64,000 nt of DNA from Amphiscolops sp. MND2022 (lineage: Eukaryota): the NCBI GenBank assembly GCA_964187785.1, contig OZ076409.1:48360001-48424000 (forward strand), given 5' to 3'. The notes under the pieces were generated by a model, which was given only the letters and a program-made list of their open reading frames with translations, was not told the DNA's origin and did no database searches. Position numbers and translations under genes: made by a program. This document shows, piece by piece, positions 12,778 through 48,665 of the stretch (position 1 is its first letter; each line of letters begins with the position of its first letter).

Positions 12778-13126
12778 GGATGGGCGGAAGTAGGTCGAAG
12801 GAACGGGATCGAAAATCAGAGTTAGTCCTGAGGTAGACATACCAAATTTTTGTATGGGATCGAAACAACTCGGATCGAAATTTTTATAATGTAGTCAGAT
12901 ATGTTCACATACCCTTAGTGCCCTGAATGCAGGAGCGAAGCGAAGCGGAGCGACGTGCCATATGGCCATGGCTCAATGTTGCTACTTGGCGAAGGGAGCG
13001 AAGCGACCGAGTCATAAGACAAATACGATAAAATTCGACCGCATTCCATTCGATCCCCGCAATTCGATCAAAAGGTTCGACAACTGTCCTTTCGACCAGA
13101 AAAATTCGACCTATTTACAGCCAGCC
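12778..13126 (+). mobile_element. 349-bp MITE (shell 1, core B), 9-bp TSD, Mutator/foldback-like
   Basis: TSD CTCGGAAGT at 12769-77 and 13127-35. Imperfect TIRs (GG.TGG.C.G.AA.TAGGTCGAA) rich in TCGAA. Same length and sequence family as 48279-48627. Confidence 0.9.
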
Positions 13127-13289
13127 CTCGGAAGTATGTAGGAGGTAGCAGGAATGTATGTTAGGAACCTAGGATTCGTTTTTACAGGCTTGTGGGGCGT
13201 GTCCGGACTTTGAGAGTGCCGGCACGTCGCCTCGGAGCTCTAACTAGAGAAGCCTCCTTAGACGATAGAAAAGTCAGCTACGTGGAATC

Positions 13290-13742
13290 AGGTCTAATGA
13301 AATAGATCTAAGAGAGGGAGCAAAACTGAGATCTAAATAAAGTGATCTAAATAATCAGGTATAAAAATCTCTTCTAATTTGATCTAATTTGAGAAAAAAA
13401 ATGAGTGAATTAGGATCTAAAACTAAAAAGTGATATAAAGTATATAACATGCCTCGGATATGTCTCCATTTCCTCTAGAGCCCCGCGGCCCCTTGGGGCC
13501 GCTTATATTCCCATCTTGCCAAGCGAGGTCGAACAGGAGCAAAGACCTAGCGGGAACGGAGATCGTAGTGGGAGCTGGTCTTTGCGACGGTGAGGGCGAG
13601 CGTGCATACATCGCATATGCCCCACATTATATTTTCGCTTTCAGAACGCATATTAGATCATAAAGGGGTTAGACCTAAGTATTTTAGATGAAATTAGATC
13701 TGAAAGTTAGATCTAACAGTTAGATCTAATTCCACTAGACCC
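13290..13742 (+). mobile_element. Foldback-type MITE (GATCTAA-repeat shell, core A)
   Basis: The left arm has GATCTAA repeats and the right arm TTAGATC repeats. Ends are GGTCTAATGAAATAGATCTAA / TTAGATCTAATTCCACTAGACC. GC-rich core A lies at ~13449-13630. No clean TSD. Confidence 0.7.
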
Positions 13743-13923
13743 AAGCAATTATATCAAAGGCGTACACTCCATAAAAGTCCCCCTTGGAGACCATTTTGTG
13801 ATCAAAAACTAGTACCTAGGGATGTAGTAAGACAACGGTCTCCTGCTCAAGCAATTAGGCATTGTCCTTCTTCCTAGATGTGCGTCGCTAGCCGGTCGTT
13901 ACATCTACTTGGGTGGTAACTAC

Positions 13924-14333
13924 GGGGACGGTTCAAATCGTAGAATATTCAAAGCGTCGAAAGCAGTTTACACGCAGTAAATACTGCGCGTCATAGTCAC
14001 GTGACCAAACTTTCATTAAATGAACCAATCAAATTCAGTCAAATGAATACAGCACAAGCGACGAACTAATTACGATAACACGTAGTCAGCTATGTCCACA
14101 TACTCCTAGTGCCCTAAATGCAGGAGCGAAGCGAAGCGGAGCGACGTGCCATGTGGCCATGCCTCAATGTAGCTACTTGGCGAAAGGAGTGAAGCGACCG
14201 AGCCATTACAACAAACATGCTAACCTCTTCAAATTGTAACCTGAAAATAATCACTGCTATGGAATTCTTTCGACGCTTTGAATAGCTTTGATTTTTTCGA
14301 CGGTTTGAATATTCTACGATTTGAATAGTCACC
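13924..14333 (+). mobile_element. 410-bp MITE (shell 2, core B), 9-bp TSD
   Basis: TSD GGTAACTAC at 13915-23 and 14334-42. TIR GG.GAC..TTCAAATCGTAGAATATTCAAA.CGTCGAAA at both ends. Core B at ~14075-14215. Confidence 0.9.
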
Positions 14334-14799
14334 GGTAACTACATTTGACTCTTTTTCCAGATGAATTTTCTAACAACTTTTGAATACATGTAGGCTCACA
14401 CTTGGATCTCGCATATGTAGCGGTAGTGAGTTCCACTTCAGTGAAGCACAATGAAAAAATGATGACTAAGAAGTTGAAACATGAAAAATTACCCATACAG
14501 ATAACTTGATTGGTACGGGAATTTCATCGATATGTTGCTGTAGGTAAGTAATTTCAACTGATTTTGAAAAGCTTTATTTCTGATTATCAATGTACTGAAA
14601 AACGTATATCAGAGATTTGAACATAATCGAGTGACGTATACTAATTATACCCTTGTTTTTCTCAATTCATAAGATGACTCGATAACAAAAAAACACGCTC
14701 TTCAAAGCCCAATTATTCGGTTTTTCTAGTGAAAGCAATGAAAAGAACTAATTTTGAAGAAAAACAGTAAAGATGATTCATCATAAGTGCGTGGAAAAG

Positions 14800-14967
14800 T
14801 GTTGTGTATACTGATTTATTCCTTTATTATATATTGACTTATAATTGCTGTAATTGACTCATGTTTTATTTTAGATGTCGATGTCCCTTTGATATGTGCT
14901 TTGATAACTGCCGTCTACAGATTACTAACCTTTATAGCAAGCGTTTTGATCAACGGGAAACACGACA
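14800..14967 (+). repeat. 5' LTR
   Basis: tgttgtg...cacgaca; matches 18842-18999 with several substitutions and a ~10-bp indel. Confidence 0.95.
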
Positions 14968-15775
14968 ATTGGTGTTCAGACCAGGATTCATTTCAAGGTT
15001 AGCATGCTTAAAATTATTGCTGCCAGTTCCTTGTACAACTCAATTGAAAAACTTCAAATCCAGTTGCGTAAACAACTACGAGAACTCGTCCACGCCGATC
15101 CCGGTTTTAGCCTGAACCCAGAGTCCGTGAACAAGTCAAAAGACGTTTACAACTATCTAAAGTCTGAAGAACCGAGAAATACGAGAATAATCCTGTAGCA
15201 CGATCTGATTAATAATACTATCACACTCCACAAAAGTAACAACTATCAACCGCAAAGTGTAAATCAGCTGGTGGCTTCATTGAGATGTCTAACAAACTTA
15301 TGCGGCATAGTTTATTGTCAACGTACAGGGTCCCCGAATTTTTTTGAAGACCTGAGAACATTGGACTGCCCAATCATCCAAGTCGCGACAGATATTTTGA
15401 GCAAGTCAGAGCAGCGCAGTGAAGTACTCGTCGAGAAGTACAAAGCCTTACATCAATCCAGCGATCTCGAACTCAGATCCCTAGGCGTAGTTCTACATGG
15501 TTATCCGAACCTGCGGAAGATCTTGAAAACAAGAGGCACCAAGCGAAGAACTCACGAGCAACGAAGAGAGGCTAAGAGAAAAAGAGAAGACAACTAAAGG
15601 TGAGCTTTTAGAGTCTCGGACTCACAGCCGTTGTTGTTACCTCTTTATAGCTTTTCGAATTAAAGGTGAGCTTTTAGAGTCTTGGACTCAAAGTCCCCTT
15701 TGTAATTCTTAGCCCTTAAGACTCAAATTGTTCGAATCGTGTTTTTTTTTCAAGTCATCACCAAAATCAATGAGT

Positions 15776-18700
15776 AAACCGGAATTGAACCTCAAGGAAC
15801 CCGATCAAGCACTTATGTGGCTCAAGACGTTCGAGGCGCGAGCGCGTATTGAAAAGAAACGGGATATCGACGCAACACCTGGAACTAGTGGACCGCCAGC
15901 TGTGGCTGCCATAGCAAAAGATTATCTAGTGACTGATTTCTTCATGAGCCAATGCGGCCTCGAAGCGTTGATAAAGCTCAGTAGCCTCGCCGCGCCGAGA
16001 AACATTGAAGACATGCATTTCGCGAACTGACGGGAAAACCTATCGAAAATCAAATGCATCAGTGTACCATACTTGTGAAGAACTAGAATTTGATAATTCC
16101 GCCTCTTCTGAGGAAACCATGTGTTATGCAGAACAAGTCGCAACTGTAGCCGAAGTCAATCACATTGGAAGCAAAGCTGAATTTCATAGCATCAAGATAA
16201 ATGGTCATGACGTTCCAATGCAGAACGACACTGGATCTTCAGTGACCATTATTTCAACAAAAATTTGATGGGAAAGTGGCTCTCCTACCTTGAGCACTAG
16301 CGCCCGATGGATTGAAGCATATGATGGACACAGAATGCTTTATCTTGGTCATCTAAAGTGTGAGATCCCTTGGAAAAAGAAAACTCAATGCGTTGACGTT
16401 GCAGTTATCGAGTCCGAGAAAGAATTCGGATTGATCGGCAGAGACGTGACCCGAGTTGATCACATTCACAACGCGTCTCTGTCTGATGTAAAAGTCTTGC
16501 CTGCAATTAAAGGAGTTAAAGCCACTATCAAACTGAAGCCTGACGCAAAACCTGTTTTCTGTCGCGCTCGGAAAGTTCCACTTGCCTTGGAAGACCAGGT
16601 CAAGATTGAATTGGCGAACCGTCAGGCACAAGGAATCCAGGAGGTGTCATGAATGCCTGGCCAGTCGTGTGGCAAAGGAAGAATGACGGATCTTTTCGGC
16701 TTTGTGCAGACTTCAAAGTTCATGTGAACGATAAGATCATGATTGAAGACTACCCTCTTCCCGACATGGAAACATTATTTCACGAGCTGGAAGGATCAAA
16801 GTTTTACGTCAAGATTGACTTATCATCTGCTTAATGTCAAATAATGCTGGATGATGCAGCGCAGGAAATTTGTGAAGATCGCCTTGTCAATAAAATCGGA
16901 AAATCCATACTCCTCAATGTGTTAAGGAAGTCGAACCTTTTTGTGGATTGGTCAACTTCTACGGCCGGTTCATCTCAAACTTCACGTCGAAAATTGCCGC
17001 AATATCTGATCTGAGGAAGAAGTCGGAGGCTGATTTCCAGTGGACCGACAAATGTCAACGTGCATTTGAAAGGCTGAAATCTGAGCTAGCATCGAAACCT
17101 GTTGTTCAGCCCTATTCTCTGAAAAAGGAAATAACGATCACAACTGATGCGTCTGAGAAAGCTACTGGCGGAGTCTTATCTCAAGAGGGGCACCCTGTCT
17201 TTTATGTATCGAAGACATTGTCTCAACCTGAGCAAAGGTACTCTAACATTGAGCGAGAAGCCCTAGGGATTGTTTTTGTGGTAAAACGCTTGAAGCAGTT
17301 TTTACTTGGCCGGAAATTCAACCTCGAAACTGATCATCGTCCCCTGGAATTCATTTCTGCTCCAAACAAGGAACTCCCAAAAACCGTATCAGCAAGAATC
17401 ACAAGATGGGCAATTTCGCTCATGGCCTTCGATTATGAGATTAAAAAGAAAGAAGGTTCCTCGATTCCTCATGCTGACGCCATGAGTAGGCTGAACTTCG
17501 ATAAGGATGACGACGAGTGCAATCTAGTCGACTACTTAAGTTCCAATCTTGATGAATTCTGTGTTCATTTTGCCGAGCATAAACTCTTTCCATCCGAAGA
17601 GTTGTGGAGTGAATGTGAACGCGATGAATTGGCGAAGCGAATTATCAGGCGGGTAATCGATGGCGATTGGAAAGCATGTACTCAAGTAGAGAGTATTTTC
17701 AAGAGAGTATCTGGTCTCCTCACAGTCGAGAACGGGCTACTGTACAATGGAACTAGACCTTACATTCCACCAAGAATGCGGAACATCGTAATTGAACGAG
17801 TCCATGACACGCACCCTGGTGTCCAGGCGACTAAAATCATGGTGAACCTAATGTCTTGGTGGCCTGGGGTCGGAAAAGATGTTGCAAAATTCGTAAGTGC
17901 CTGCTCTAAATGTGCAAAAATCCGACCACGAACTGAGAAATCGATCGATACTTGGCCAGATGCACAACCATGGGAGAGACTACACATGGATTGGGCTTAT
18001 ATTCAAGAAGTAGGCAACATTCTTATCATTGTCGACGCTGGTTCTGGTTGGATAGAAGCGATCAAATGCGGCGATCGGCCCACTGAAAATGTCATGCATT
18101 GTCTGTCCGCCATTTTTCGGAGATTTGGGGTCCCACACTTTTTAGTTTCCGACAATGCAAAAGAATTTATCAACGACTAAGTTGTCACGTGGTTACAGGC
18201 TCAAGGCTGCACCAAATTAGAGAGCCCAATCTACAATCCAAGGAGTAATGGACTTGCCGAACGGGCTGTGCAGACTGTAAAGAAAGCAATGAGGGCATGG
18301 AACTTGTCTCTTAGTGTCAGTTTCCATGCATTTCTGCTGCGAGTCTTGTTCACACACCGTACCACTTCTTCCGTGAGAGGGAAGACTCCCTCAGAAGTTC
18401 TGCTTGGAAGGAAAATGCGACTTCGTGCTGTCATCAATTATGCCATCGGAGAGCGCGTAGTTTTTCGTGCTGGACCTCACGCTGAGTCTTTTCCTGCGAG
18501 GTATGTCGTTCGGAAGGGCAATAATACAGCATGGCTCACTAAGGAAGATTCAGACGGGTCCGAGAGAACAATTCTAGCGAGTACTAGTCAAATTGCTCCC
18601 TTTGCTAGTCCAACTACCGCTACCCCTAATCGAGTGACGGCTAAATCAACTACAGATGGTACTACGACCACGGGCGTGGCGGAACAAACTTCGACATGCG

Positions 18701-18819
18701 TTTTTAGTAGAGGCTCGTCTTTGGTTGTAGAGTCTTCTACTACTCCCGAGGTCCAGCTTAGGAGGTCTGCACGAGTCAGGAAACCGAACCCAAGAGTCAA
18801 CGACTTCATTTGCAAGTAG
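15776..18819 (+). pseudogene. Broken gag-pol of the gypsy element
   Basis: gag (MSKPELNLKEPDQALMWLKTFEAR), protease (DTGSSVTII), RT N-terminus (RLCADFK...YPLP...KIDLSSA) with the YxDD region deleted near 16870, RNase H (TTDAS...YSNIEREALGIV...TDHRPL), integrase (H..HPG, CSKC, HMDW, SDNAKEF, GLAERAVQT). Contains stops and frameshifts. Confidence 0.92.
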
Positions 18820-18841
18820 CTATGAACTCTTGGAAGGGGGA

Positions 18842-18999
18842 TGTTGTGCATACTGATTTATGCCTTTATTATTTTTTGCTGTAATTGACTTATGTTTTAT
18901 TTTAGATGTCGATGTCCCTTTGATATGTGCTTTGATAACTGCCGTCTACAGATTACTAACCTTTATAGAAAAACGTTTTGATCAACGAGAAACACGACA
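18842..18999 (+). repeat. 3' LTR
   Basis: Preceded by the PPT and followed by the TSD AAAAG. Confidence 0.95.
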
Positions 19000-19029
19000 A
19001 AAAGCATAAGTACTCCTGTTGGGGAACTG

Positions 19030-19560
19030 TGGTTTCAAACACAGTTTCAATAGTTTTTGCACCGACTGCCATATTTTTAAACACCTTTTAACTTGTGTTT
19101 GGAATCAAAGGTGTTTATCAATGGTTACAAGTTTATCAAGTAATTGCAATGGTCTGACTTCTTTACTATGGTGGAGTCTACAGTAACTGTCTCTAGGTCG
19201 TTGAGGCGTTTATCATTTTTGAGGGAGAAGGTAATGAATTATGTTTCACCTGCATTCAAATTCAGTTAATTGAGATAAAAGTAATATTCTTCTACCTTAT
19301 AGATATTGTCTTGTAATACTTCAAGAGCAATCCCGGATTTTTCATCACCATAAAAAAGTTAACCATCGTCAGCATATTGTAAAGTTTCGCTCAGAAGTTC
19401 TAGAAGAACATTCACATACAAGTTGAAAAATTACTTTGCTATGAGTGTTCCAGAGGAAACTCCTTGTTTCACTTCAATCCATTCCGATAGAACACCATTT
19501 ACAGACACTATGTGCTTTACTGGATGAGTCCAACAATCCAAACTACAAGCAAGTCAATTT
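19030..19560 (-). mobile_element. Degenerate LINE (CR1/L2-like) RT fragment
   Basis: The minus strand reads VSVNGVLSEWIEVKQGVSSG...FNLYVN...LQYADD. Confidence 0.7.
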
Positions 19561-21326
19561 GCCACTGTCTAATGAATGACAAGTAAATGCTGCAACTTCA
19601 AGGTGCGTGGTTAACCCTCCTGTCCCAGTGGAAGCCAATATCGACGGCGTGGATGTTTCCTTTGGGAGTATGTTCAGTTTCCCATTGAAGACGTTGTTGC
19701 AATCAGCAAAAAGGAACACGTTGATGAGCCTGCGTAACTCGTGGTATCATTCACAACAACCGACGCTGCAACACTAGCCCTGCAGGTGTATCAATAATGG
19801 CGTTCCCGCTTACACCAGATGGGCAATGCAAGCAAGCACTATGTTACGACCATAGGGTGTTGACATGGACATGTACTCTGCCAACAGCGAAACCTTCAAG
19901 ACCTTTTGCCTTGCTGAACACATGAAATGAGAGAAAATCTGTTGTTGACAAATCTATTGCAAACCAACCTATCTAAGAAAAGATTTAGAGCTGACAGGAT
20001 TCTAACCTATTCTTCCAAGTCGCGACCTGACGAGCTGGCCATTACCATACAGCTCCGATAATTGAACAATCCGTCTACACTTATTAATCAAATTAGTAGT
20101 TGCTATATTTGAAGACCAGTTGAATTAAAAACATAAGAGTCTTCAACAGAACGTTGCGCTCCATCTGTCGGAAAAGGAAACTTTTTTTCAGTTGAAGGCT
20201 CTCAGCAGGCAACTTGAACTGCGGAACAAGGGACTTGAAGACCTAAAAACCTAAAAGATCAGTGGAATCTGATGAGAGAGTGTGCAGATGACACCAAAAT
20301 TCAGTTGAAGATCTACAGCGTCGAAATGGGAAATCGCTGCAGCAAATCGATCGCTTACTAGATGACTATGAGCGTGCCATTAGGGACCTTGAAGAGAAAA
20401 GGCAGCAGCATAGCTACCTAACACTAAAGATGCCAGCTGCGATGCAATGGGACACCATCATACCCTTTATTAATTGTTCCCCAGAATCATCAGCGGCGCA
20501 GATAACCTCCCATATTCGAAAATAGCCCCTCCGGGGCACGCTAATGTTTCACCTTTAATCGTTCAATAATAATAGAATCACATTTGGAGTTCCAATACAC
20601 TCCTGTTTAATCATTATTTAGCGCAAAATTATTCATTGGACTAGTTTATACCGCTGTTAAATTTCGGAATGAAGCAGACACAACTTTTTTTTAGCGTAGA
20701 CGAAGTTTCGCATTGGCATTTGAATGCAGGCGAAGCTCTCCGCGAAAAAATTATTAAAACTAATTTGCTTCATCTCAAAAATTCGGCGCGCGAAATCTAA
20801 TTACGAACATTCGCTCGCTCATTCTCAATGACGTCAGCGTACGAAAGCATAATTACAACTCACTCGTTCCCATCGCACGAGAATTGAAATGTCGTCGGCA
20901 GCTTGAGAAATTTAATTCACACGCTCGTAGTCACTGCTGAAGAAAATATTTGAATTTTTCAGTATCACGACGAAAATTGTACTAAAAAAGTAGACATCTT
21001 GAATTTCCAATAATATTCCTGCTATTCCAGAAATAGTTAAAACTGAGTGTGCTAAGTCATCCCGACAAAAACTGAGACGTGGAGATGTTTAAACGGCTCC
21101 AGCAAGCAGAGAGAATACTCGGAATTCCAACTGCTCCAACAACTCATGATGACGAAGGAATAGAGGAAGCACACGCTCTTTGTCAACTTATGAAAGGACT
21201 AGAAATTTAGTTTACTGTTCTCTGTTGTCAACTCCTCTCAGGGAAGGGAACAATACAGAAAACCTATCTAAGGACTTTTGGAAAAGTTAGAAACATTTGA
21301 ACGCCAAACGTTCAGACTGATTTACG

Positions 21327-24200: not shown

Positions 24201-24329
24201 CAGTCCATGCAGCGCAAGCATTGGAGGCAAGTCAAGTCCAAAGTTCCCATTGTCTGCTTTTCGAGAGAATTGAGTGTAGCATGACGTGAGAAGCGACCAG
24301 CAATTTTGGCGCAAGGAAGATCATGTAAA

Positions 24330-30528: not shown

Positions 30529-31431
30529 CGTCTACCGCAAACCAGTTGGGGATAAAGTTCGTTCATTCTTCCCTTTATTCATGAAGTTTGAAAGCCATTG
30601 CCGAATGAACTTGATCATTTTACAAACTTAAAGTTGATACAAACTATCACTGATTTTGAAGTCTGAAAATCACAGTTAATCCCAATTTTGCACAATTTGT
30701 AAAACTTTAATCGCCTGAACATTTGAAGCCGTTTTTATTTGCTTTCTGTTTTTAGATCCCATCATTTCCACGAAACTTTTGAAGTTTAACTTTTTGGCCA
30801 ATTTAAGCAATTTTTGTGGTTGAGATGCAATTTCTCGAAACTGGTTTCAGCTATTACCATTCCAATGCCAGGTTTCTGTAGCTCTGGTTCTCTTCTATGA
30901 AGTTTTTGCCGAAACAAAAAATATCGGAAATGCAATATATCATTGATATTCATCGTTAGATTTCTAAAAGCGGAGTAAAGTTCATTTGCTATTAGTCTTA
31001 TTAGCATTTGCATGAAAAACGTGGCACTGCTATAATCTTATGATAGAAATTGCAACTGAATTTTGTCCCGCATTTAGAAAACTAACGATGAATAAAGGAC
31101 GGATCTCGTTAGTAGATACTTTACAAGCTGTCATTTCGTGTTGATTGTTACTATACAAGCGACATGCATTTTTGACAAATTGCTTACAAAATAGAGATTG
31201 TTCTTATATCGTTTGCTATTGGATTGCATATTCAGGCAAATGCTTCCGCAGAGTTGAGGAAGTTTGAAGTCAACATTCCTTGACACGAAAGAGAAATAAC
31301 AGACTTGGGTCAATTGATAGCAGTGAACCAGAAAGACTCAAGAATTTCGGACAATTTAAGCTTTGGACAAGCACTCTGACAACTGGTCGACATTTTCAAA
31401 ATCCCGAATTTGAATTATTCATCTGCTCAAA

Positions 31432-32933: not shown

Positions 32934-33133
32934 NNNNNNNNNNNNNNNNNNNNNNNNNNNNNNNNNNNNNNNNNNNNNNNNNNNNNNNNNNNNNNNNNNN
33001 NNNNNNNNNNNNNNNNNNNNNNNNNNNNNNNNNNNNNNNNNNNNNNNNNNNNNNNNNNNNNNNNNNNNNNNNNNNNNNNNNNNNNNNNNNNNNNNNNNNN
33101 NNNNNNNNNNNNNNNNNNNNNNNNNNNNNNNNN
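32934..33133. other. 200-N scaffolding gap
   Basis: Run of exactly 200 N. Confidence 1.
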
Positions 33134-36440: not shown

Positions 36441-37149
36441 GCAATCTTTTTGTTGCTTGTCAGTTTTTCCACAATCTGGATGTAATGCGCTTCCTTTGTT
36501 TCCATGTTGTATTTGCTGAAGTCTACTATTGGCAAATTGTCGCCCCGTCTTATCTCACTATCTTCTTCCGCATCGGCAGCCTCTATTTCCAGGTCGCCTT
36601 CTTCAGTTGCTGGCTGTTCTACAAAGTGTCATCGAGACTTCATTTGAACCTTTTAATCACTCAGAAAAACGGAGTGCGGATAGAGACTTGACAAGGGATA
36701 AAACCTGATAATTATTTGCAGCGAACACCCTCTTGAGACATTTCCAAAACGCAATTCTTTGTTCAGTATGATTGCCACGTTCCCAAGGGTTTGCAATGAT
36801 GCGGTCGTGCTCAGTTCTTTTTTGACCTTGGCTCGATGCTTCCGAAGAACCGCGTGATTTTGCGGCCGGCTTGGATGTTCGTTTGTATGGACTATCTGTG
36901 CATCAGTCTCAGGTACTAAGTTGTATCAGCAGACCCATGCAGGAAATTCTGCAATGTTTCGTCACAGTTTGTTGGAATACCTCTTCGATTCACGTCGCTT
37001 GTCATCTTTTTCCAGTTCAAGTTTCAGACCTGCATTTGGCTCTTTACAAATTGCAAGGGAGTAGTCATGAACTCTATCTTCTAAACTGTCACGCCATTTC
37101 TTCAAATACTATCGTCAAGTTCGAACTCTCTGAACATTTCGGTTTGGAA

Positions 37150-38150: not shown

Positions 38151-39074
38151 GATTTAGACGCTGAAAAGCGTGCTGCGTTCTTCCATTAGGCCATGCTGCT
38201 TCAAATAATGGTTTCCAATCTCAGGATAGGAAAAAAAGAGGAGACGTTCGAATGAAAGAGACAATTTGCTCAAACTATATATGGTCGATAATTCTCAACA
38301 TCACTGCTAGGTACCGAAGTGTGTGAAGCTGTCACAGAGAAATGTTTCCATCCGGTGCCAAGTGGAGCTACTTTCGCTGCCTTAGAAGAGAGCCTAAAGG
38401 GTTGTTGCTAAAACGCTGAAAAAGAATTTGATATAGAAGAATGTATGTTGTCTGGTCCTGTTCTCAAAGACTCATCGCAAACATTCAAAAGAAGTTCAAC
38501 ATCAGTGCCAAAAAATCAAAGTGTTTAATGAAAATGTCGCAACTGATGTCCATGCAATTCACTAGTTTGAGATAGTTTGTGACGTTTATGTTGACCTAGA
38601 AGCGACTGATAATTGAGATTGTTTTCACGAGTTCTACACACACACTTACTTAGTATTATATCATAATTAACCACAGCTGATACAAAACGGCTGTTGAAAA
38701 CAGTCAAATATAAAAATGAGTCTCTTGTAGAAATTATTATTGAATTAGATGTTTTCGGGGCGCTTGGGTCTACGTTGCTTGAGGAAGTTTCAGGCGACTC
38801 CAAACTAATTGATGGCAACCAATTCCGGTATTCAACAGCCCTAACCCCTGTTGGAATTCAATTAATGAGTTGTTTGAATTTGAACATTCCAAACGAAATC
38901 TACGAACTTCAAAAAAGATAGTGAAAACCGGAAAATTTCACCAAATTCAACAATTTTTCGGGTAAATGATGAACGCGAGATTGTTGTGAACAGTATTTTC
39001 AGTGGTGTCACCACAATTGATCGAATAATAGAGTAGTAATAATGATTCTGATTACAATTGGAAAAAAAACAGTA

Positions 39075-39225
39075 TCATTGTTCAAATCTGTATTGAAACG
39101 TTTCCAAACCACTCGGGGTAATCATCAGCATATCATCTAAAAAGATAGCACCGATCCACGGAATGTAAATAAAGTAACAAAAAGGAAGAATATAATCAAT
39201 GAACCCAAATGTTAAAGTTTTTAGT
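39075..39225 (+). repeat. Dispersed ~140-bp repeat, second copy at ~52350-52485
   Basis: Both sites share tcatcagcatatcatctaaaa...acggaatgtaaataaa...aaggaa.gaatata. Confidence 0.8.
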
Positions 39226-39269
39226 TGTGACCAAATGTCACAACAATTGAAATTGTTAAGTGAGTTCCC

Positions 39270-41330
39270 CATTGTGGTACTACTTGCGCTGGTTGAGGGC
39301 CGGCGTCATGTGCGAAATGTATAGCGCCTCCAAGGTAAGTAACTTTTATAAATCTAAAGATCTGTCTACAACTTTCGTCGTCAAAACCCGTTTGTCCGCT
39401 CCAGATTCTTGGAAATGGCTTCCCATCGGTGACACGCCCTTCAAATGCTCTGCGAGCCTGGATGACAGGTTTCTAGTTGTTTGGCCGAAATAGCAGGAGT
39501 GACATCCTGGACATTCGTTTTCGTAAACCACCCGACTCGTAAGCATCTTTTTGAATGGACTTTTCAAACTGAGCCTGCATTTCTTTAATTTTCAGATGGT
39601 GAATATCGTGGATAATCCAAGTAACTGTATCTTCTTCGCAAAGCAATCTTGTTCCTCTCCATGGTATTGAAGAACAAAAGTGGGTCTGTGAGCATTGCTT
39701 CTTTCTACGTTAGAAGTCCACTTGTGGTCTCCAAAATGGCCACCTTCTCCACAGTGCTTCTCACTATCTCTTGCTAAAATGGAAGGGGTACTTGTTCTCT
39801 TCAAATGGGTTTGTTGCCTTTTGCACACCTCCATGAAACTCTTGCCAGTCTGATGAAGCTTGGCTAATTCAAGGGATCGTCCCTTCATTTATGTTCCTCT
39901 TGTACAGGACAGGGGCACAACTGTGAAAACCCAGCATTTAACCTGTATCAGTGGGATTTGAATGCCATTATTCTGAACCTTGTTGATATTGTCTGCTAAC
40001 CCACCTAACTGAGAAAGCCATCGCACAATCTTTTTCCGTTCCAATGATAAGTTGTGAGTTGGGATGTAATTTGTTAGCCATCACTAAAACCTTGTTAGCA
40101 TCTAAAAAACACACTGTTCGACTAATGTCATTGACATATGTAGCAAAAACTTTAGTTTTACTTGTCGGCTCATATTTGCATCCACACGACCATGTATCAT
40201 CCGCTGGAATTTTTATCTGTTCATCAGTCAGATTGGTACATTTACGATGGTACCACCGGTCACAGTTTTCACAATAAACTGAATTACCAATGTTACCTTC
40301 ATTTTGGTGGCATTCCTCAATGAAATATTTCAGCAGCTAGATCATGTGGCGTTTCATTGATAATTTCTAAGCGGGTTTCAAAGCCTTTCACCCAAATGCT
40401 GGCTAAGATAACCGAAAAGTGCAGAGCTCATAGCCAAACCATCAACTTGTGAACACCATTAAAAACTTGCCATTGCACAAAGAAGCACCGTTAGTCACCG
40501 CGAGCTTCATCAGACTCCTAAATTTTCCGCTTGTCGACTGGAGGAATCTTCCTCCGCTTGTAGAGCAAATCACATGTCAAATTATTAGACACTTCTAGTG
40601 TATAAGCTCTTGACATCCAATGATATTAACACTTCACCGGGGTCCAAAGCAATAGATTGAAGATTCTCCTTGATGGGTTTCGCGGACGTCTCACTTTTGG
40701 CCTCGCTGATATCCGGTAACTTCCTTGGTAAGCTTCTCTTAACAACTACCAGGGAAAGAAAAAACCGGTTTCAATGGGGTACCCTGTTTGTGCACCTCAG
40801 CTAAGCCATACAAGCGAGCCGTCTGAGCTCGTGTTCATTTCCCACGTTTGTACCTTTCTTGTGCTAATTTACCATCCCGAACCAGGGACATCAGTCTTCT
40901 ATTAAAAGCAGACTCGATTGACAGTTTATCCTCGTTAGTTTCATCAACCTTTTGGAATTGAGAGCAAGGAACCTGCTCAGTGAGTTGGTTTGCATAATCC
41001 TCCACCGGCATCAGCCAGGAACTCTTTCCTTTTTTAAAGGACACTGCTTTCAAGGCGTTAACTCGCAGGTACTTATCATCTTTAGAAGCAATGGTGTCGT
41101 GTCTTTGGTTCTTCATCAGATTCAAACACCTGAACGCGATTGCTTTCAATTTCATTGAGTGTGTTTGCATCATCATTTCTCTCTTCAATGTCAACTTAAA
41201 ATCTATCGACGTCTCATTTTTGGCCTCGCTGATAGCCGGTAAGTTCCTTGGTAAGCTTCTCTTAACAAATACCAGGGAGTGATAAATTCGGTTTCTCCTG
41301 CTCTTGCGAAAGGTTCTCCGGCTTCGAGTT
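39270..41330 (-). mobile_element. Decayed Penelope-like element (RT + GIY-YIG endonuclease)
   Basis: RT motifs SLDVKSLYT and DGLAM-like, followed by VVYENECPGCHSCYFGQTTRNLSSRLAEH (GIY-YIG). Internal ~65-bp duplication at ~40690 and ~41215. Confidence 0.85.
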
Positions 41331-41412
41331 CTGTCGCTCAACCACGCTAGTGCGTTCGTTGCTGAGACCCAAACGACAGTGACTAAGTGGTCATGCGGCT
41401 CAAAGTTACCTA

Positions 41413-41874
41413 GCTCAAAGTCATTTGGCTTAATTCATTTGGTCACTTGGGTTAAATTTTTTCAACCAAATGTCTTCGATAATGGTCACTTGGCTTAAAG
41501 TCATTCGGTTTAAAATAAGCAAATTGCAAACGCGTGGCAGATTTTGTCAAAATAATTATTATAACGTAGTCAGCTATGTTCACAAACCGCTGGTGCCGTA
41601 AATTCAGGAGTTGAGCGGAGCTAGGTGCCATATGGCCATGAATCAATGTTGGTATTCAACGAAGGGAGCGGTGCAACCGAGCCTCACAACAAACAAGCTA
41701 ACCTCTTCGAATAAATTCTACCAGCCGTTCTTCTACTTTCTAGATATTTCGTTGAGTTTCATTTTGTTTCAGTATTTCAGCCACTGCCGGAGTTAGAATG
41801 GACTTTAAGCTTTTTAGGACAAAACTCAACATAAACAATAACGCAAATGAATTTAGGCCAAGTGACTTTTGACC
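41413..41874 (+). mobile_element. Degenerate MITE (shell 3, core B)
   Basis: Ends gctcaaagtcatttggcttaattcattt / aaatgaatttaggccaagtgacttttgacc form an imperfect TIR. A diverged core B lies at ~41560-41700. No TSD seen. Confidence 0.65.
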
Positions 41875-42074
41875 TGACAGGGACATACAAATGTCGGTTC
41901 AACAAGAGAACCTTTAGTTTATTTCTTAAAGTCTATAGTCTTTGTTTTTTCTTCAACAGACTGAAGTCTTTGACAATTCTTTGCGCAGCAGTCGTTGTGG
42001 AACATATGCACCATCATTTTGCTAAAACAGTTATTTTCAGGAGCTCTGGAGGGAACGAGGAAATCTGGCTCCGC

Positions 42075-42350
42075 AGATCGGCAATGCTGCCTGTGTTCTA
42101 AAAATTGTGAGCGACGGAGATGCGTTTAAAGAATATAATTACATATAGCCTTTTTTTCTAAACCAGTATATCATTCCCCTTTTTTAAAATTTTGTTTCTA
42201 CCGGTCGACTGGGATAGTGGCTCGTATGAGAAGGGTTTTGTTTTATTGTTCCTGTTCTTGTTTAGTGAGATAGTGGCAGGTTTGGGGGGCCACGGGCGTG
42301 TTTCTTCTCCCCCAACATGAACCTTGATTGACACACGTGGCAACTAATGA
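42075..42350 (+). mobile_element. Isolated 3' end of the CRE-like element
   Basis: cagatcggcaatgc...tacatatagcct...ccggtcgactgggatagtggct...cttctcccccaacatga matches 51975-52240. Confidence 0.85.
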
Positions 42351-42630
42351 TGATCCTTGATATATGAACGAAAAGTCACAAAGTTGGCAAGGGACTTCTT
42401 GAGGAAGGCAATTTGTTCTTCGTTGTGTAGTGAAATCGTTCGCTGGTACTCCAAATATTGAATATTGAATATATGTCTTAATCTTAAAGAGCTCCTATTT
42501 GTGAGCAGCTGCACAAACAAAGTTCAATTCAAGCTCAAGTTCTTCTGGGTTTTATGAGAATTGAATCTGCCGGTTTCAATGATAGACCTTTCCAGAATTG
42601 GGAATTGCAGAGCGTTTCGGAAGGAGACTT

Positions 42631-42825
42631 CTATTGTCCACATTTTTCATTGCTCAGAGTAATCCATACAATTGCAGTGGTAAAGTGGTAATGTTCGACA
42701 GTTTGTTCGTAGTATCCGCACGTAGATTTCGTAGATTCGGCCTTCCAAATCTTGTACAAGAAGCCATTTAAACTGCAATGACCAGATGTGAGTCGGAAAT
42801 TGAGTGTTCCAGTTCTCTCAAGCAA
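42631..42825 (-). mobile_element. LINE ORF2 C-terminal zinc-knuckle fragment
   Basis: RLTSGHCSLNGFLYKI...TCGYYEQTVEH fits TGH..LN..L..I....C.CG...T..H. Confidence 0.6.
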
Positions 42826-43109
42826 GTTTACTCATAATAGCATTATTGCCTAGGGGAATTGCGGGAATTTCGCACTGGTTTGTCCACAAATTCCACCACA
42901 GCTTAGTTTCATAGGGATCGATTTCTGATGTTTGTGTAAGCTAAGGTGTATGGAAATAGCTCCACCAGAGTAATACATCTAGTTGAACGCGCTTTGAAAT
43001 CCCAAGCTAGGAAGCGTTTGAAGGATTCAGCGTCAGCACGGACTTTCGATTTTTTTTTCTGGTGGCTTATCAAAACGAAATTTACCAGATCATCGTCTGT
43101 TGTGAGAAT

Positions 43110-43588
43110 GGTGGGGTATTTTGGGACCGAACTTTTGTGTGATCGAAAACGAAATCGGAAATGGATCGAACGTTTTGAGATCAAATTAATCAGTTTTTGC
43201 TAAGTGTTTGCTCCTGCAAAGCAGTAAAAAGCTTTTAGAGTAATTTAGGTAATATTCCCCACCTAGTTTGTGGTCCTTTACGGTGTATGCACGCTCGCCC
43301 TCACCGTTGCAAAAACCAGCTGCTACTACGATTGCGTCGCGATCTCCATTCCCGCTAGGTCTTCGCTCCTGTTCGACCTCACTTAGCAAGATGGGATCAG
43401 AAGCAGCCCCAAGGGTCCGCGGGGCAATAAAAGAAATGGTGGCTTATCCGAGGGCCAAATCATTGTTATTTGAAAACGCTAGGTATATGAAAACATTGAT
43501 TCGATCTCATTTTCTTCGACCATTTTACTTCGATCTCAGTGACAGATTGCATATTCGCGCAACTTGATTCGATTCAAACATCCACCGC
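43110..43588 (-). mobile_element. MITE (GATCGAA-repeat shell, core A in reverse)
   Basis: GATCGAA repeats on the left and TTCGATC repeats on the right; GGTGG...CCACC ends. Core A reverse complement at ~43268-43455. Flanks tgtgagaat / cgtgagaac may be a decayed 9-bp TSD. Confidence 0.65.
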
Positions 43589-43649
43589 CGTGAGAACTTT
43601 GGTCAGTGGATTCATCTTAAGTTCGATGTTTTTTACTGCTGGTTTGTAG

Positions 43650-44050
43650 GACCCTCCGTTGCGGTGTGTAATATTGCGTTCTGTACTTGGGCAATTTTAT
43701 TCAGGTTTCGAGTGTTCCAAGCGTGAAGGCCGTGGAGCATTTTGGGCTGTAGAACAGATTTGTATATTTTCAGGATGGTACTGCTTTTAAGTCCAGATTT
43801 CAGCTGACAGCACTCTCACTTTCGCCCATTCTGGCCAGCCGCAGTCAATGTCTCTTTTTTACCACCGATAACAGCTGTCGCAATCAAAGTGTTACTATTT
43901 TTGTGTTTCTGTTTCGTCTTTCGCTGCACTGTATTCATCTTCTGTGCAATTTATTGGCAGGAAAACAGTTTTGCTGACAGTGATTTTTATACGGTCCTCA
44001 AAACACCATGTCTGAGTTTTGTTCATCGCTTGGGCGTTCTCATCTAGGCA
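43650..44050 (-). mobile_element. LINE RT C-terminal fragment
   Basis: The minus strand reads GLKSSTILKIYKSVLQPKMLHG...QVQNAIL..ATEG. Confidence 0.55.
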
Positions 44051-44081
44051 TTTATAAAATTATTAAATAGTTTCATATATT

Positions 44082-44486
44082 ATGGCAACCACTTCTGACG
44101 ACGACGTAAACGATACCTCACACAGCGAGGAGGGAGGACGAACTCGACTGGAAAGCGACAGCGCGAAATCAAAGCTGGAGAGTGCTGGCCCTGGATACTA
44201 CCCAGTCGTGAACGAGCTCCTGAACGCTGGCAACGACGCTCTGGAGGCCCGTCTCAGGAAGATGACAAAGGCATACCTGCTGTGTCTAACACGTGAACTC
44301 GCCTCACAACTACGCGACACCAAACACCAACTACTGGATGAAAACAAGATAAGTGAATCATTATTGCAAATTACTTCCGATGTTAAAGAACTGAAACAAA
44401 ACTCAGCTGTTCAAACCAAAAAAGTGCAGCAGCAACCAATCATAGTATCTGTTCATGATAACTCAAATGTTACAGAACCGTTTTGA
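44082..44486 (+). CDS. 134-aa ORF of unknown function, possibly a LINE ORF1 N-terminus, fused to a CRE fragment at ~44470
   Basis: ATG start, coding-like composition and a coiled coil (LLQITSDVKELKQ). The last codons overlap CRE sequence tacagaaccgttttgaaagatctc. Confidence 0.35.
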   Translation: MATTSDDDVNDTSHSEEGGRTRLESDSAKSKLESAGPGYYPVVNELLNAGNDALEARLRKMTKAYLLCLTRELASQLRDTKHQLLDENKISESLLQITSDVKELKQNSAVQTKKVQQQPIIVSVHDNSNVTEPF

Positions 44487-46697
44487 AAGATCTCAAAAAA
44501 TTGTTGAAGCGGAAAAAAACGCTGGGATTCAAAATTAAACCCACTAAATGTGAATTTTTCTTCCTTGGACACATCACTGAAACACACAAGCAGACTTATT
44601 GGAGAAGAAAATCAATGAACTGGAAAAAATTAATGGAATAGTTCAAAAGCTAGATGCGCACTATGGTTTTTTATGTTGAAAAATTGCCTCAGTCTGCCAA
44701 AGTTGTTTTACTTCCAGAGAACCAATACATCTTTTAATCACGCATCTCTCTTGGAAAGTTATGACAAAACCGTACGCGACGGGCTTTCCAAAGTGTGTAA
44801 CGTGAACTTCGACGATATTTTGAGTACTCAGCTGGCTCTGCCCGCTGAAATGTGTGGTCTTGGGGTGTCATCCGCATCATTATTAGCACTTCCAGCCTTT
44901 TTTTGATCTCAGCTTTTGATGCGAGTGACTTTCTCACGACGATTTCTTCGAAAACATCCGTAGATGTTTCGTTTAGAAAAGCGCTTGAGAAAGGTTTGAG
45001 TTTGACGGAAGAACAGAAACGTCCTCTCGATGGATCCAGAAAAATTGGACACAACCTGTCTTCGTCAGAACCGCCCAAGAATTGATTTCTAGAATGGATG
45101 ACAAATGTTCAAAAGTTTTCAACGCTTGTCATGGCAAACTCGGGTCTCAATGGCTGAACGTCGTTCTTTGTAAAAACCTAGGCCTAAAATTAGCAACTTC
45201 GGATTTCAATGGTTTACGTCTCGGTGCCAACATTGGTGCCATCTTTGGTGCGAAACTTAATGCACTGAAAAAGTTTGATGGAGGACTTCGTCCTATTCCT
45301 GTATTACACCCTGAAGTTTATAAGTACTCACACTCGGCGTACAGTCAATCAAGTTTTCTTTTTTACGGTGATTCAGTAATCAATATTTGTGAAGGGACCC
45401 AGCAAGGAGATCCTGAGTCTCCAGCTGTGTTTTAGGATTCCATTCAGGATCTTATTGACAGTTTGGAGTCGAAAATAAACTTACGGTACCTTGGCAATGG
45501 AATTTTAAGTGATGACTACAGAACCGTTTTGAAAGCTCTCTAAAAATTGTAGAACGGAAAAAACGCTGGGATTCAAAATTAAACCCACTAAATGTGAATT
45601 TTTCTTCCTTGGACACATCACTGAAACACGCCGATTGACAACTTTAGCATTTGTTGAAAAACTGCCCTGAGATCAAACCACCAGGGAAAGATGAACTTAT
45701 CATTCTTGGTTCACCGCTCGGCCCGAATTCACAAGCAGACTTATTGGAGAAGACAATCAATGAACTGGAAAAAGTTAATGGAATAGTTTAAAAGCTAAAT
45801 GCGCACTATGGTTTTTTTATGTTGAAAAATTGCCTCAGTCTGCCAAAGTTGTTTTACTTCCAGAGAACCAGTACATCTTTTAATCACGCATCTCTCTTGG
45901 AAAGGTATGACAAAACCGTACGCGACGGGCTTTCCAAAGTGTGTAACGTGAACTTCGACAATATTTCGAGTACTCAGCTGGCTCTGCCCGCTGAAATGTG
46001 TGGTCTTGGGGTGTCATCCGCATCATTATTAGCACTTCCAGCCTTTTTTGATCTCAGCTTTTGGTGCGAGTGACTTTCTCACGACGATTTCCTCGAAAAC
46101 ATTCGTAGATGTTTCGTTTAGAAAAGCGCTTGAGAAAGGGTTGAGTTTGACGGAAAAGCAGGAAAATCCTCTCGATGGACCCAGAAAAATTGGACACAAC
46201 CTGTCTTCGTCAGAACCGCCCAAGAATTGATTTCTAGAATGGATGACAAACGTTTGAAAGTTTTCAACGCTCATCAAGGCAAATTTGGGTCTCAATGGCT
46301 GAACGTCGTTCCTTGTAAAAACTTAGGCCTAAAATCAGCAACTTCGGCTTTCAATTGGTTTACGTCTCGGAGCCAACATTTGCGTTGTGCATACGTGCCA
46401 CTATGGTAAGAGAGTTGAACGGGATGGTTTACACGATCTTTCTTTCGCCAAGAGTGCTGGTCGCTTCTCACGTCATGCTACTCTCAATTCTCGCATAAAG
46501 CAGACGTTGGGATCTGGATCTCTCGACTTACCTTCAATGCTCGAACCGCGTGGACTGTACCGAACCGATGGCAAACGCCCAGACGGTGTTACCATGATTC
46601 CTTAGGAAAAGGGTAAACAGCAGGTGTGGTATGTCAGAGTTGTGGATGCTCTTGCACCTAGTCGCCTGAATCAAGGCTCTTTATGCAACCCGGGAAC

Positions 46698-47197
46698 GGG
46701 TGGCTGAAATAGGTCGAAGTTTTCTGGTCAAAAGGACAGAGGTCGAACCTTTTGATCGAATTGCCGGGATCGAATGGAATGCGGTCGAATTTGATCGGAG
46801 CCTTAGAGCCGGAAACGTTCTTTGTTTGCCTCAAGTCGATTGACTATCATAATGTGGGGCATATGCTGTGTATGCACGCACGCCCTCAACGTCGCAAAGA
46901 CCAGCTCCCACTACGATCGTTTCGCGATCTCCGTTCCCGGTCCGTCTTTGCTCCTGTTCGACCTCGCTTAGCAAGATGGGAACATAAGCGGCCCCATGGG
47001 CCGCGGGGCACTAGAGGAAAGGGGGACATATCCGAGACACATATCCGGGGACATATAATCTGCGGCAATTCGATTTGTTTCCCATAAATCAAAATTTCGA
47101 TCCGAGTTGTTTCAATCCCATTCAAAAATTTGGTATGTCGACCCGAGGACTGACTCTGATTTTCGATCCCGTTCCTTCGAACTTTTCCCGCCCACCT
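46698..47197 (-). mobile_element. 500-bp MITE (shell 1, core A) inserted in the CRE RLE region, 9-bp TSD
   Basis: TSD CCCGGGAAC at 46689-97 and 47198-206. The empty site atgcaacccgggaaccaccgcc is present in the paralogue at ~51750. Confidence 0.92.
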
Positions 47198-47246
47198 CCC
47201 GGGAACCACCGCCACCGAGGCTGAAGTGCGTAAAATTGAGAAGTAT

Positions 47247-47409
47247 AAAAACCCAAGCTCGACATGATTGTGAGAAAATAACCATTACAGGACTCGAACC
47301 TGCATCTCAAGACAGATCTAGCTAGCAGTCAAGCGCCCTAACCCTTAGACCAAATGGCTTATTCAATCTCACCAATCATTCGACTTATCACTAACAACGC
47401 CGTTGTTAT
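47247..47409 (-). mobile_element. tRNA(Ser-like)-containing SINE-like insert
   Basis: Minus strand 47359-47280 folds with an acceptor stem AGCCATT/AATGGTT, A-box TGGTCTAAGGG, CT-GCT-AG loop, long variable arm ATCT/AGAT and T-arm GCAGG-TTCGAGT-CCTGT; the anticodon stem is broken. Followed by TTTTT. Flanks agaagtat / agaagcat look like a TSD. Confidence 0.7.
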
Positions 47410-47858
47410 AGAAGCATCGCAAATTAATAGACATTGGATACCATTTTCAACCGGTGGCATTGGAAGTACAGGGTTCTTTAGACGAGAGCAGTGAAATTTT
47501 CATCACGCGTCTCTATAAAATGCTCTGTCGTTCGCACGACGATCAACGAGCTGGCAGCTTTTTGAAGCAGCGGGTTTCAATGGCTCTTCAGATCGGCAAT
47601 GCGGCCTGTCTTCTAGGAACTGTGAGCGACAGAGATGCGTTCGAAAAAATTTATTACATAGTTAATTTTTTTGGAAAAAAATGTCTATTTCATTTCAGTT
47701 TTAAAAATATCTAACAGTCGACTGGGATAGTGGCTGGTGTGAGTAGTTTGTTGATTGGTATTTTTGTTACTGGTCTACTGGGATAGTGGCTAGTATGTGG
47801 TTCCTTTCGTTCGTTGCAGACCACGGGTGTGTGTCTTCTCCCCCCAACATGATGATAC

Positions 47859-48665
47859 GGGAACAGGACGTTTCGGCAAAAGAAAAAATCGAGACGTTTC
47901 GGCAAATTTTTCATGCCGAAACATCCCATATTATCTTGGTTTTGTTTTTGTTTTTCTACAAACTGGTTAGGTCCAGTTTGTAGAATTCTGGAATTGAAGA
48001 AAAACGATAAGACAATGTAGGAATGATGGAAAGCATAAAACGTGCCTAGGATATGTCCCCATTTCCTCTAGTGCCCCGCGGCCCCTTGGGGCCGCTTTTA
48101 TTCCCATCTTGCTAAGCGAGGTCGAAAAGGAGCGAAGACCTATCGGGAACGGAAATCGCGAAGCGATCATAGTTGGAGCTGGTCTTTGCGACGGTGAGGG
48201 CGAGCGTGCATACACCGGATATGCTCCACATATCATACGAAACGTTTCGGCAAATGTTTTTAGCCTGAGACGTTTCGGGGGTGAGCGGAAATAGGTCGAA
48301 AGAACGGGATCGAAAATCAGAGTTAGTCCTCAGGTCGACATACCAAATTTTTGAATGGGATCGAAACAACTCGGATCGAAATTTTTATAACGTAGTCAGA
48401 TATGTTCACATACCCCTAGTGCCCTGAATGCAGGAGCGAAGCGAAGCGGAGCGACGTGCCATATGGCCATGCCTCAATGTTGCTACTTGGCGAAGGGAGC
48501 GAAGGGACCGAGCCATGCAACAAATACGATAAAATTCGACCGCATGCCATTCGATCCCTGCAATTTGATCAAAAGGTTCGACCTCTGTCCTTTCGACCAG
48601 AAAAATTCGACCTATTTACAGCCACCCACGTTTCGGCATATTTTTTTGCCGAAACGTCCGGAATC
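47859..48665 (+). mobile_element. MITE (ACGTTTCGGC-repeat shell, core A), 9-bp TSD, hosting a nested MITE
   Basis: TSD TGATGATAC at 47850-58 and 48666-74. TIR GGACGTTTCGGCAAAA / TTTTGCCGAAACGTCC. The empty site caacatgatgatacacatggc is at ~52226-52246. Confidence 0.92.
48279..48627 (+). mobile_element. 349-bp MITE (shell 1, core B) nested in the previous element
   Basis: TSD ACGTTTCGG at 48270-78 and 48628-36. GGGTGAGC...GCCACCC ends. Confidence 0.92.

Follow-up and report, generated by a model that had tools for sequence, protein, structure and literature searches.

The window, a stretch of 64 kb of DNA, contains eight small transposons in which unrelated ends enclose one of two recurrent internal sequences. 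Six mutually unrelated kinds of terminal arms (shells 1-6) were distinguished, each of which has core A or core B inside, and shells 1 and 3 hold both, A and B being found in different elements. These elements are MITEs, i.e., non-autonomous Mutator-like transposons. Their cores probably pass from shell to shell when one element inserts into another and internal deletion or faulty gap repair ensues, a process referred to here as re-wrapping, to which we assign a probability of roughly 60%.

All eight TIR elements reported in the preliminary description exist, and each of its pairings of a shell with a core was recovered by self-BLAST of the window and a motif search (3 exact matches, 0 expected). 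The elements, with their cores and target-site duplications (TSDs), are as follows:

12778-13126, + strand: shell 1 + core B MITE of 349 bp; core B at 12891-13015; perfect 9-bp TSD CTCGGAAGT
13276-13770, + strand: shell 4 + core A MITE of 495 bp with GATCTAA-repeat arms; core A at 13431-13630; TSD 8/9
13924-14333, + strand: shell 2 + core B MITE of 410 bp; core B at 14082-14206; perfect 9-bp TSD GGTAACTAC; 40-nt TIR
41405-41880, + strand: old shell 3 + core B MITE, its arms being those of the autonomous MULE L074; core B at 41554-41712, with left extension 41525-41716
43110-43589, - strand: shell 5 + core A MITE with GRTCGAA-type arms; core A at 43281-43453; imperfect TSD
46698-47197, - strand: shell 1 + core A MITE of 500 bp; core A at 46845-47040; perfect 9-bp TSD CCCGGGAAC
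47859-48665, + strand: shell 6 + core A MITE with CGTTTCGGC-repeat arms, host of the element at 48279; core A at 48024-48237; perfect 9-bp TSD TGATGATAC
48279-48627, + strand: shell 1 + core B MITE nested in the shell 6 element; core B at 48392-48516; perfect 9-bp TSD ACGTTTCGG

These elements vary in length from 349 to 807 bp and are non-coding; none of the 12 ORFs of at least 150 aa in the window overlaps with them. In self-BLAST, the two shell 1 elements with core B (12778-13127 and 48279-48627) are 94% identical over 350 bp. Shell-1 arms are found again at 46698-47201 (107 bp at 90% and 102 bp at 92% identity), where they enclose core A and not core B; thus, the reported occurrence of core B in two copies of this shell and of core A in the third was borne out. 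The five perfect TSDs described earlier were likewise retrieved (elements at 12778, 13924, 46698, 47859, and 48279), and self-BLAST revealed no core copies in the window beyond the eight listed, in agreement with the earlier statement that neither core is found there outside a TIR shell. One start position, 13290, had to be corrected to 13276. The copy at 41413 is old, with identities of 77-81% to its relatives and a poorly defined left end. An assembly gap (32934-33133, 200 N) lies between the two clusters of elements; it touches none of them, and no comparison depends on continuity across it.

The elements have been mobile. Using a relaxed TIR/TSD finder, perfect 9-bp duplications were detected in five window elements and in about 40 sampled elements; the duplications vary in sequence, and the termini begin with GG or GGG. 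For two of the window elements, an unoccupied paralogous target site is available:

51755-51763, + strand: unoccupied paralogous target site for the 46698 element, with a single CCCGGGAAC
52229-52237, + strand: unoccupied paralogous target site for the 47859 element, with a single TGATGATAC

Furthermore, at the 12778 element, exactly 358 bp, i.e., its 349 bp plus 9 bp, are missing from contigs of four public runs, and public contigs skip 504-505 bp at the 13276 element. Shell 1 with core A, a minority combination, has been amplified, its junction being spanned in at least 39 other places in the genome. The C1 family is very young: its cores are 99.5% identical, and all copies have perfect duplications. 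Nesting of elements, which was directly seen, is common in this genome.

For two shells, autonomous MULE partners were identified, which supports the earlier assignment of the elements to the Mutator/foldback group. These MULEs are compact, i.e., 2.2-2.6 kb with a single ORF for a PF10551 transposase of 472-528 aa, and have arms in common with the two shells. One of them (L074:2924-5109) contains a 528-aa ORF between shell-3 arms, the left one of ~150 bp and the right one of ~95 bp, and has a TSD matching at 8 of 9 positions; identity between the shell-3 arms and the arms of the autonomous MULE is ~78-90%. In the second case (L068-L071), a 472-aa ORF with a PF10551 match (E 4.6e-14) lies beside a stretch of 87 bp that is 96-97% identical to the L3R3 shell arm. 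Besides the partners of shell 3 and L3R3, none was found for shells 1, 2, 4, 5, 6, and C1 in the small part of the genome that was sampled. A core is absent from all sampled copies of the autonomous MULEs at six genomic loci (L068-L071, L073-L077). A possible resemblance of the left extension of core B to the 5' leader of the MULE with shell-3 arms was dropped, as the identity was only about 47%.

Core A is about 200 bp long and core B about 130-215 bp. The two are homologous at the head (41 bp) and at the tail (26-45 bp), and none of 2000 shuffles reached either score; the left-end motif previously noticed in both cores is therefore real and extends into a longer head, with a common tail in addition. 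Core B lacks the hairpins of core A, and the RNA fold of core A is not better than that of shuffled sequences (z-scores of -1.8 and -1.6 for the two strands); neither folding nor the Rfam scan described below points to a structured RNA gene. The GC content of the cores is 56-58%, whereas that of the arms is 36-43%. In a genome sample of ~250 kb, gathered largely by searching with the cores, they were present in at least 12 shells of eight arm-motif classes, and their identity was 85-100% between shells whose arms do not align. Candidate places in the genome number at least 1531 for core A and at least 513 for core B. A search with the head motif did not reveal a third type of core in the sample, which is biased towards A and B, and an exact 29-mer of core A is absent from public metagenome contigs. 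The sequence L021:344-583, a candidate for an empty shell 1, is an internal deletion that retains both ends of core B, not an unoccupied shell.

Could the cores be separate small mobile elements, e.g., SINEs, Helitron-like elements or tiny TIR elements, that insert into MITE interiors by their own means? Such a secondary unit, colonizing MITEs, had been suggested in the preliminary description. The edges of the cores are fairly sharp across shells, A and B share a head and a tail like members of one mobile family, and the opposite strand of core A displays a GC hairpin followed by CTAG, reminiscent of a Helitron end. However, conservation extends beyond this CTAG, and the shared extent depends on the shell, varying from 125 to ~235 bp for core B and from 190 to 283 bp for core A. 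TSDs around the cores were also looked for, but the 20 shell representatives examined showed no direct repeats next to the core (p > 0.08 in every case). Free-standing copies, i.e., copies clear of recognized shell arms, nested insertions or truncations, were likewise lacking among the 136 core hits of the 250-kb sample. For this analysis, the 108 full-length hits were inspected arm by arm; for shell 1, with its short and imperfect TIR, the score for inverted repeats between the flanks is insensitive. The cores matched neither Rfam entries (E <= 1) nor tRNAs. With no core having its own duplication and none free-standing in the sample, the self-mobile core was rejected as very improbable. The tRNA/Rfam scan did show two tRNA-like sequences elsewhere in the window, outside the cores.

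Elements of the Mutator superfamily are known to capture GC-rich fragments, and separate MULE lineages might have independently captured the same GC-rich host or repeat sequence by Pack-MULE-like transduplication. The difference in GC content between cores and arms and the existence of autonomous elements without cores would fit such a scenario. We nevertheless regard it as improbable. More than 10 independent captures with nearly the same end points are not to be expected, and neither a parent locus nor coding similarity was seen in the sampled sequence, where every core copy lies within a shell. Moreover, the interiors hold pieces of the arms of other shells and of the other core, which argues for transfer from MITE to MITE rather than for origin from a host locus. 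Thus, L020-type elements have the same junction and retain 15 bp of the MULE-derived L3R3 arm, and L043-type elements retain ~60 bp of the inner arm of shell 4, including one GATCTAA unit. In shell 3 with core A, the left extension of core B and the first 16 bp of core B itself are retained ahead of core A. In shell 1 with core A, the junctions are located beyond the limits of the core, adding ~30 and ~55 bp of foreign sequence. The two arms are always replaced as a pair, and every amplified family of the sample has matched arms.

The tree of core A is a star with near-zero internal branches, and the consensus sequences of the families are almost identical. The copies do cluster by shell, with 15 label changes against a minimum of 13 and an average of 27 for shuffled labels, as would be expected if all families descended from one ancestral MITE and the arms merely evolved fast, without any exchange. 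This explanation is extremely improbable, however, given that the family-level cores are almost identical while the arms are unalignable, that the same shell holds A in one family and B in another, and that the arms of two shells match different autonomous MULEs as described above. Simple descent from one family, which would have undermined the initial interpretation, is thus contradicted.

A further explanation is that homologous recombination or ectopic gene conversion via the core, the only stretch that the families share, is the main route of exchange and keeps the cores uniform. The star-like tree with its near-identical consensus sequences is consistent with this, and the head and tail common to A and B could act as conversion end points. 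Also, in each of 14 pairs, similarity was higher in the core than in the co-inherited flanks. As the comparison of cores with arms is biased on core-selected loci, it was redone on bystander copies only: in 12 copies of shell 1 with core B that were not core-selected, divergence was 3.35% in the arms and 1.81% in the core (p = 0.004), i.e., the core diverges about half as fast. However, a single crossover in the core predicts mismatched arms, which is at odds with the matched arms of the amplified families, and both the junctions of shell 1 with core A and the donor-arm remnants lie outside the core. Altogether, recombination or conversion via the core is unlikely to be the main route. Gene conversion among the thousands of copies could still account for the lower divergence of the core without selection, as could mutation or alignment bias affecting the repetitive, AT-rich arms.

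The paired change of the arms, the remnants of other shells in the interiors, and the star-like core tree together support the earlier proposal that MITE families exchange cargo by recombination-type events. In the re-wrapping that we favor, several lineages of compact autonomous MULEs in the same genome would mobilize the MITEs, and the shells would be the arms of those MULEs. The middle is foreign to the MULEs: core A and core B, which still have head and tail in common, form the two branches of a single ancient lineage of internal sequence. A core-bearing MITE may end up inside another MULE or MITE, whereupon, as we infer, internal deletion or abortive gap repair would strip the interior of the host and the arms of the guest. 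New arms and the old core would then be left, at times together with a remainder of the previous arms. This combination may go on to amplify as a family of its own, and the lineages that keep the whole core would be those that spread. The intermediate, i.e., a whole core-bearing MITE in an autonomous MULE that is later trimmed, was not caught in the sample.

The whole 196 bp of core A is kept in 12 of 12 core-A shells, in a sample drawn largely by core searches in which families with badly eroded cores would be missed. The edges of the core are thus tighter than random deletion predicts, which points to selection or to some end-defining mechanism, and the apparent spread of lineages with a whole core suggests that it may help propagation in cis. 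The idea that the core is a conserved cis-element, put forward in the initial description, fits the observations in so far as the core exceeds the co-inherited interior in conservation and an eroded core was seen in none of the amplified core-A families; an actual benefit is suggested rather than proven. Tentatively, the core might even be a long-lived selfish cis-module that raises the amplification of the surrounding MULE arms and outlives transposase lineages through repeated moves into the arms of whatever MULE is active at the time. Such a module might act as a transposition enhancer, as an anti-silencing or open-chromatin element, or as a small transcription unit that starts from the TATA-like head.

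The origin of MITE interiors and the birth of new MITE families are long-standing open questions, for which this genome constitutes an unusually rich natural experiment: it offers at least 12 Mutator-type shells, two homologous cores, very young families, identifiable autonomous partners, and remnants that give the direction of transfer. If the core boosts transposition, it would be a portable cis-element useful for transposon vectors, and selection among MITEs would act not only on the ends but also on the interior.

Sharing of cores by these Mutator-type MITEs is unusual rather than new in kind, and a case in Acropora corals has already been published. The CMITEs of these corals comprise several MITE families with different TIRs and a common internal region that is more conserved than the TIRs (Wang, Zhang, Meyer, Matz 2010, PLoS One 5:e10700; PMC2872659). 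Their interior is not derived from an autonomous partner, past mobility was shown by an empty allele, and the authors suspect that the interior aids transposition (PMC2872659). CMITEs are piggyBac-type elements of ~100 bp with a TTAA duplication, CCYT termini, a 75-bp core, and 13-14-bp TIRs, and they form six families with ~1600 copies (PMC2872659). Here too, the interior is more conserved between families than the TIRs, a likeness at the level of organization. In contrast, the elements described here are of the Mutator type, with a 9-bp duplication, arms of 100-250 bp consisting of subterminal repeats, and a length of 350-800 bp, and they carry two homologous cores in at least 12 shells, with remnants that trace the transfer from shell to shell. 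Given their varied 9-bp duplications and GG/GGG termini, without TTAA or CCYT, they work like CMITEs but are not members of that group.

With Mutator-like MITEs and foldback elements, they have in common the 9-bp duplication, imperfect TIRs starting with GG, arms built of short motifs, and partners with a PF10551 transposase. However, in known MULE-derived MITE families it is the shared ends that define the family, the interiors being unrelated or parent-derived, whereas here the interior is shared across unrelated ends. Like Pack-MULEs, the elements contain foreign GC-rich DNA between MULE arms, with aberrant repair or template switching as the likely origin, but their cargo is one recurrent non-coding module, passed among transposon families and present in thousands of copies, and probably not a fragment of a host gene. 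In CORE-, V-, and Deu-type SINEs, which are retrotransposed RNA elements dependent on LINEs, a conserved central domain persists while the flanking enzyme-recruiting modules are exchanged. The elements described here consist of DNA and depend on MULE transposases, so the likeness is one of logic only; if the core is indeed a selfish cis-module, it would be the DNA-transposon counterpart of those conserved central domains.

The eight small TIR elements that the preliminary description had placed in the window were seen again by self-BLAST and direct reading, and beyond them self-BLAST found no further copy of core A or B in these 64 kb of the 1.07-Gb eukaryotic assembly. By the same two approaches, the shared interior pieces were located at:

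12891-13015, core B
13431-13630, core A
14082-14206, core B
41554-41712, core B
43281-43453, core A
46845-47040, core A
48024-48237, core A
48392-48516, core B

As claimed, shell 1, a pair of TIR arms of ~107 and ~101 bp with 90-93% identity among copies, holds core B twice (elements at 12778 and 48279) and core A once (46698). The element assigned to 13290 does exist, but its start was misplaced: skips in public contigs and family alignments revise its ends to 13276-13770, with a duplication matching at 8/9 positions. The 48279 element, which has its own duplication, sits nested within the 47859 element. A 200-N assembly gap (32934-33133) lies between both element clusters; it touches no element and is used in no comparison.

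The elements are real transposon insertions. All five perfect 9-bp duplications claimed were found, and empty targets of the 46698 and 47859 elements are present as single 9-mers at 51755-51763 and 52229-52237, respectively, in paralogous copies of the surrounding repeat. Such empty sites are available because 44467-52300 is a duplicated block, built of repeats of roughly 1.1 kb and of segmental duplicates with 88-98% identity; a near-perfect 278-nt palindrome lies inside it at 50516-51079. Furthermore, in public contigs from four runs (all of one study, with only two samples among them), exactly 358 bp (349 + 9) are missing at the position of the 12778 element, and public contigs skip 504-505 bp at the second element.

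Several other features of the window were recorded. A 410-aa ORF (16948-18180) with RNase H, integrase zinc-finger and integrase core domains is a fragment of a Gypsy-like LTR retrotransposon, unrelated to the MITE cores. Two tRNA-like sequences (Rfam RF00005) on the minus strand, at 47279-47359 (42 bits; no anticodon assignable by ARAGORN) and 19986-20056 (31 bits), may be SINE heads or pseudogenes. A small, coreless hairpin-like inverted repeat at 30947-31094 (58-nt arms, 32-nt loop) may be a different type of MITE. Positions 1-10000 have a strong A-over-T skew (0.19-0.21) and 36% GC, and differ in this from the remainder of the window.

Genome-wide, there are at least 513 candidate places for core B and at least 1531 for core A. 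The summed contig depth of the cores, which does not equal copy number, exceeds that of unique flanks by two to three orders of magnitude. A largely core-based search yielded 58 loci, which together with the window contain 60 full copies of core A and 48 of core B. Their flanks split into many unrelated clusters, and ~40 of the elements have a perfect 9-bp duplication and imperfect TIRs starting with GG. Eight classes of arm motif were distinguished (GRTCGAA, GATCTAA, CGTTTCGGC, CACTTGGC, CAGCAGAA, TTCAAA-type, AAGTTCGAA and AAATGACAT). Core A occurs in at least nine shells and core B in at least five, with shells 1 and 3 holding both. The minority combination of shell 1 with core A is a family in its own right, since matches across its 121-bp junction occur at 39 or more other places; shell 3 with core B is old and rare. 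C1 (693 bp), the largest family with core A, has cores that are 99.5% identical and duplications that are perfect, which indicates very recent activity. Coreless members of a core-bearing arm class also occur, as illustrated by a 260-bp foldback MITE (L018:2237-2496) with GGTCGAA-repeat arms, a 45-bp loop and a perfect 9-bp duplication.

Alignment shows cores A and B to be homologous. The common left-end motif noticed earlier extends to the first 41 bp (~76% identity), and the last 26-45 bp align as well; the scores of 19 for the head (shuffles, 6.5 ± 1.3) and 13 for the tail (5.1 ± 1.0) were each reached by none of 2000 shuffles. The middles are unlike, and the GC hairpins of core A are absent from core B. 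The cores match no Rfam family or tRNA, and fold no better than expected by chance. The suggestion that they are a secondary mobile unit had to be abandoned: every one of the 136 core matches in the sample, 108 of them full-length and examined arm by arm, is associated with recognised shell arms, a nested insertion or a truncation, and in 20 shell representatives the core has no direct repeats on its flanks. Thus, the cores are not an independently inserting element.

Two of the shells have autonomous partners. The genome contains more than 150 matches to PF10551 (MULE), many in open frames of 400-528 aa, and the proposed search for MULEs with shell TIRs succeeded for shell 3 and for L3R3, a shell from the sampled loci:

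L074:2924-5109, autonomous MULE of 2.2 kb; 528-aa ORF, duplication matching at 8/9 positions, arms homologous to those of shell 3
L068-L071 and L073, 472-aa PF10551 ORF adjoining 87 bp of L3R3 arm (96-97% identity)

In the former, ~150 bp of the left arm and ~95 bp of the right arm are homologous to shell 3, and the right arm hardly differs from that of the MITE combining shell 3 with core A. Other MULEs (L075-L077) are equally compact, with ~100-bp arms of roughly 15-bp repeats and, in one case, a perfect 9-bp duplication. No core was found inside the autonomous elements inspected at any of these loci. The shared arms and the coreless autonomous elements together identify the shells as arms of MULEs, to which the cores are foreign. 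The 472-aa transposase gene lies in head-to-tail tandem arrays at two loci, G000:C10:484321-505762 (L068-L071) and G000:C13:37422500-37432499 (L073), with periods of ~3.5 kb and 4.26 kb. The last unit of the C10 array has a complete core-B MITE within the right arm of the MULE; the remaining units contain just the first 87 bp of this MITE, followed by a 169-aa ORF without a Pfam match.

How, then, do cores reach new shells? The tree of core A copies is star-like, with hardly any internal branching, and the copies cluster according to shell (15 label changes; possible minimum 13; average with shuffled labels 27), which indicates that acquisition of the core by each shell was recent, happened once or a few times, and was followed by amplification. 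This tree rules out common descent combined with rapid evolution of the arms. In the sampled amplified families, the left arm always matches the right, which speaks against single crossovers within the core. The stretch shared between pairs varies from 125 to ~235 bp for core B and from 190 to 283 bp for core A, and remnants of former surroundings persist: elements of the type at L020 keep the exact L3R3 MITE junction and 15 bp of MULE-derived inner arm, those of the type at L043 keep ~60 bp from the inner arm of shell 4, including one GATCTAA unit, and shell 3 with core A carries the left extension and first 16 bp of core B ahead of core A. Nested insertions are common. The simplest account is re-wrapping, in which a core-bearing MITE would end up within another MULE or MITE, after which internal deletion or abortive gap repair would cut the composite down to the new arms and the old core. 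No intermediate was seen among the sampled loci. Abortive gap repair is an established source of deletion derivatives (Rubin and Levy, 1997, as cited in PMC2213677), and MITE birth mediated by microhomology has been described (PMC3814204). Of the exchange between MITEs proposed initially, the exchange itself is upheld by the core tree, arms and remnants; the trimming step we infer.

An intact core may be favored, and the cores may be the conserved cis-element that was also suggested initially. The whole 196 bp is retained by each of the 12 core A shells, though their junctions lie just 0-60 bp outside, and internally deleted copies occur as scattered single events. Similarity is higher in the core than in the co-inherited interior for all 14 inter-family pairs compared (e.g., 99% vs. 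92% and 98% vs. 85%). In 12 copies of shell 1 with core B that were not chosen by core, divergence from the consensus is 3.35% in the arms and 1.81% in the core (p = 0.004). Between A and B, head and tail remain alignable and the middle does not. These observations are consistent with selection, at the level of the element, for a complete core; as alternatives, they may stem from gene conversion among thousands of copies, from mutational bias of the AT-rich arms or from the core-based sampling.

The nearest parallel in the literature is provided by the CMITEs of Acropora, six families of piggyBac-type MITEs with differing TIRs around a 75-bp interior that is more conserved than the TIRs and of unknown origin (PMC2872659). 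The logic is alike, but the superfamily here is Mutator, and the present system differs in its long, repeat-built arms, its two homologous cores, its larger number of shells and its traces of the transfer route. It has neither the TTAA duplication nor the CCYT ends of CMITEs and therefore does not belong to that group. Thus, the shared-core logic was already known from corals, and the Mutator-type case with transfer traces described here is a variant of it.
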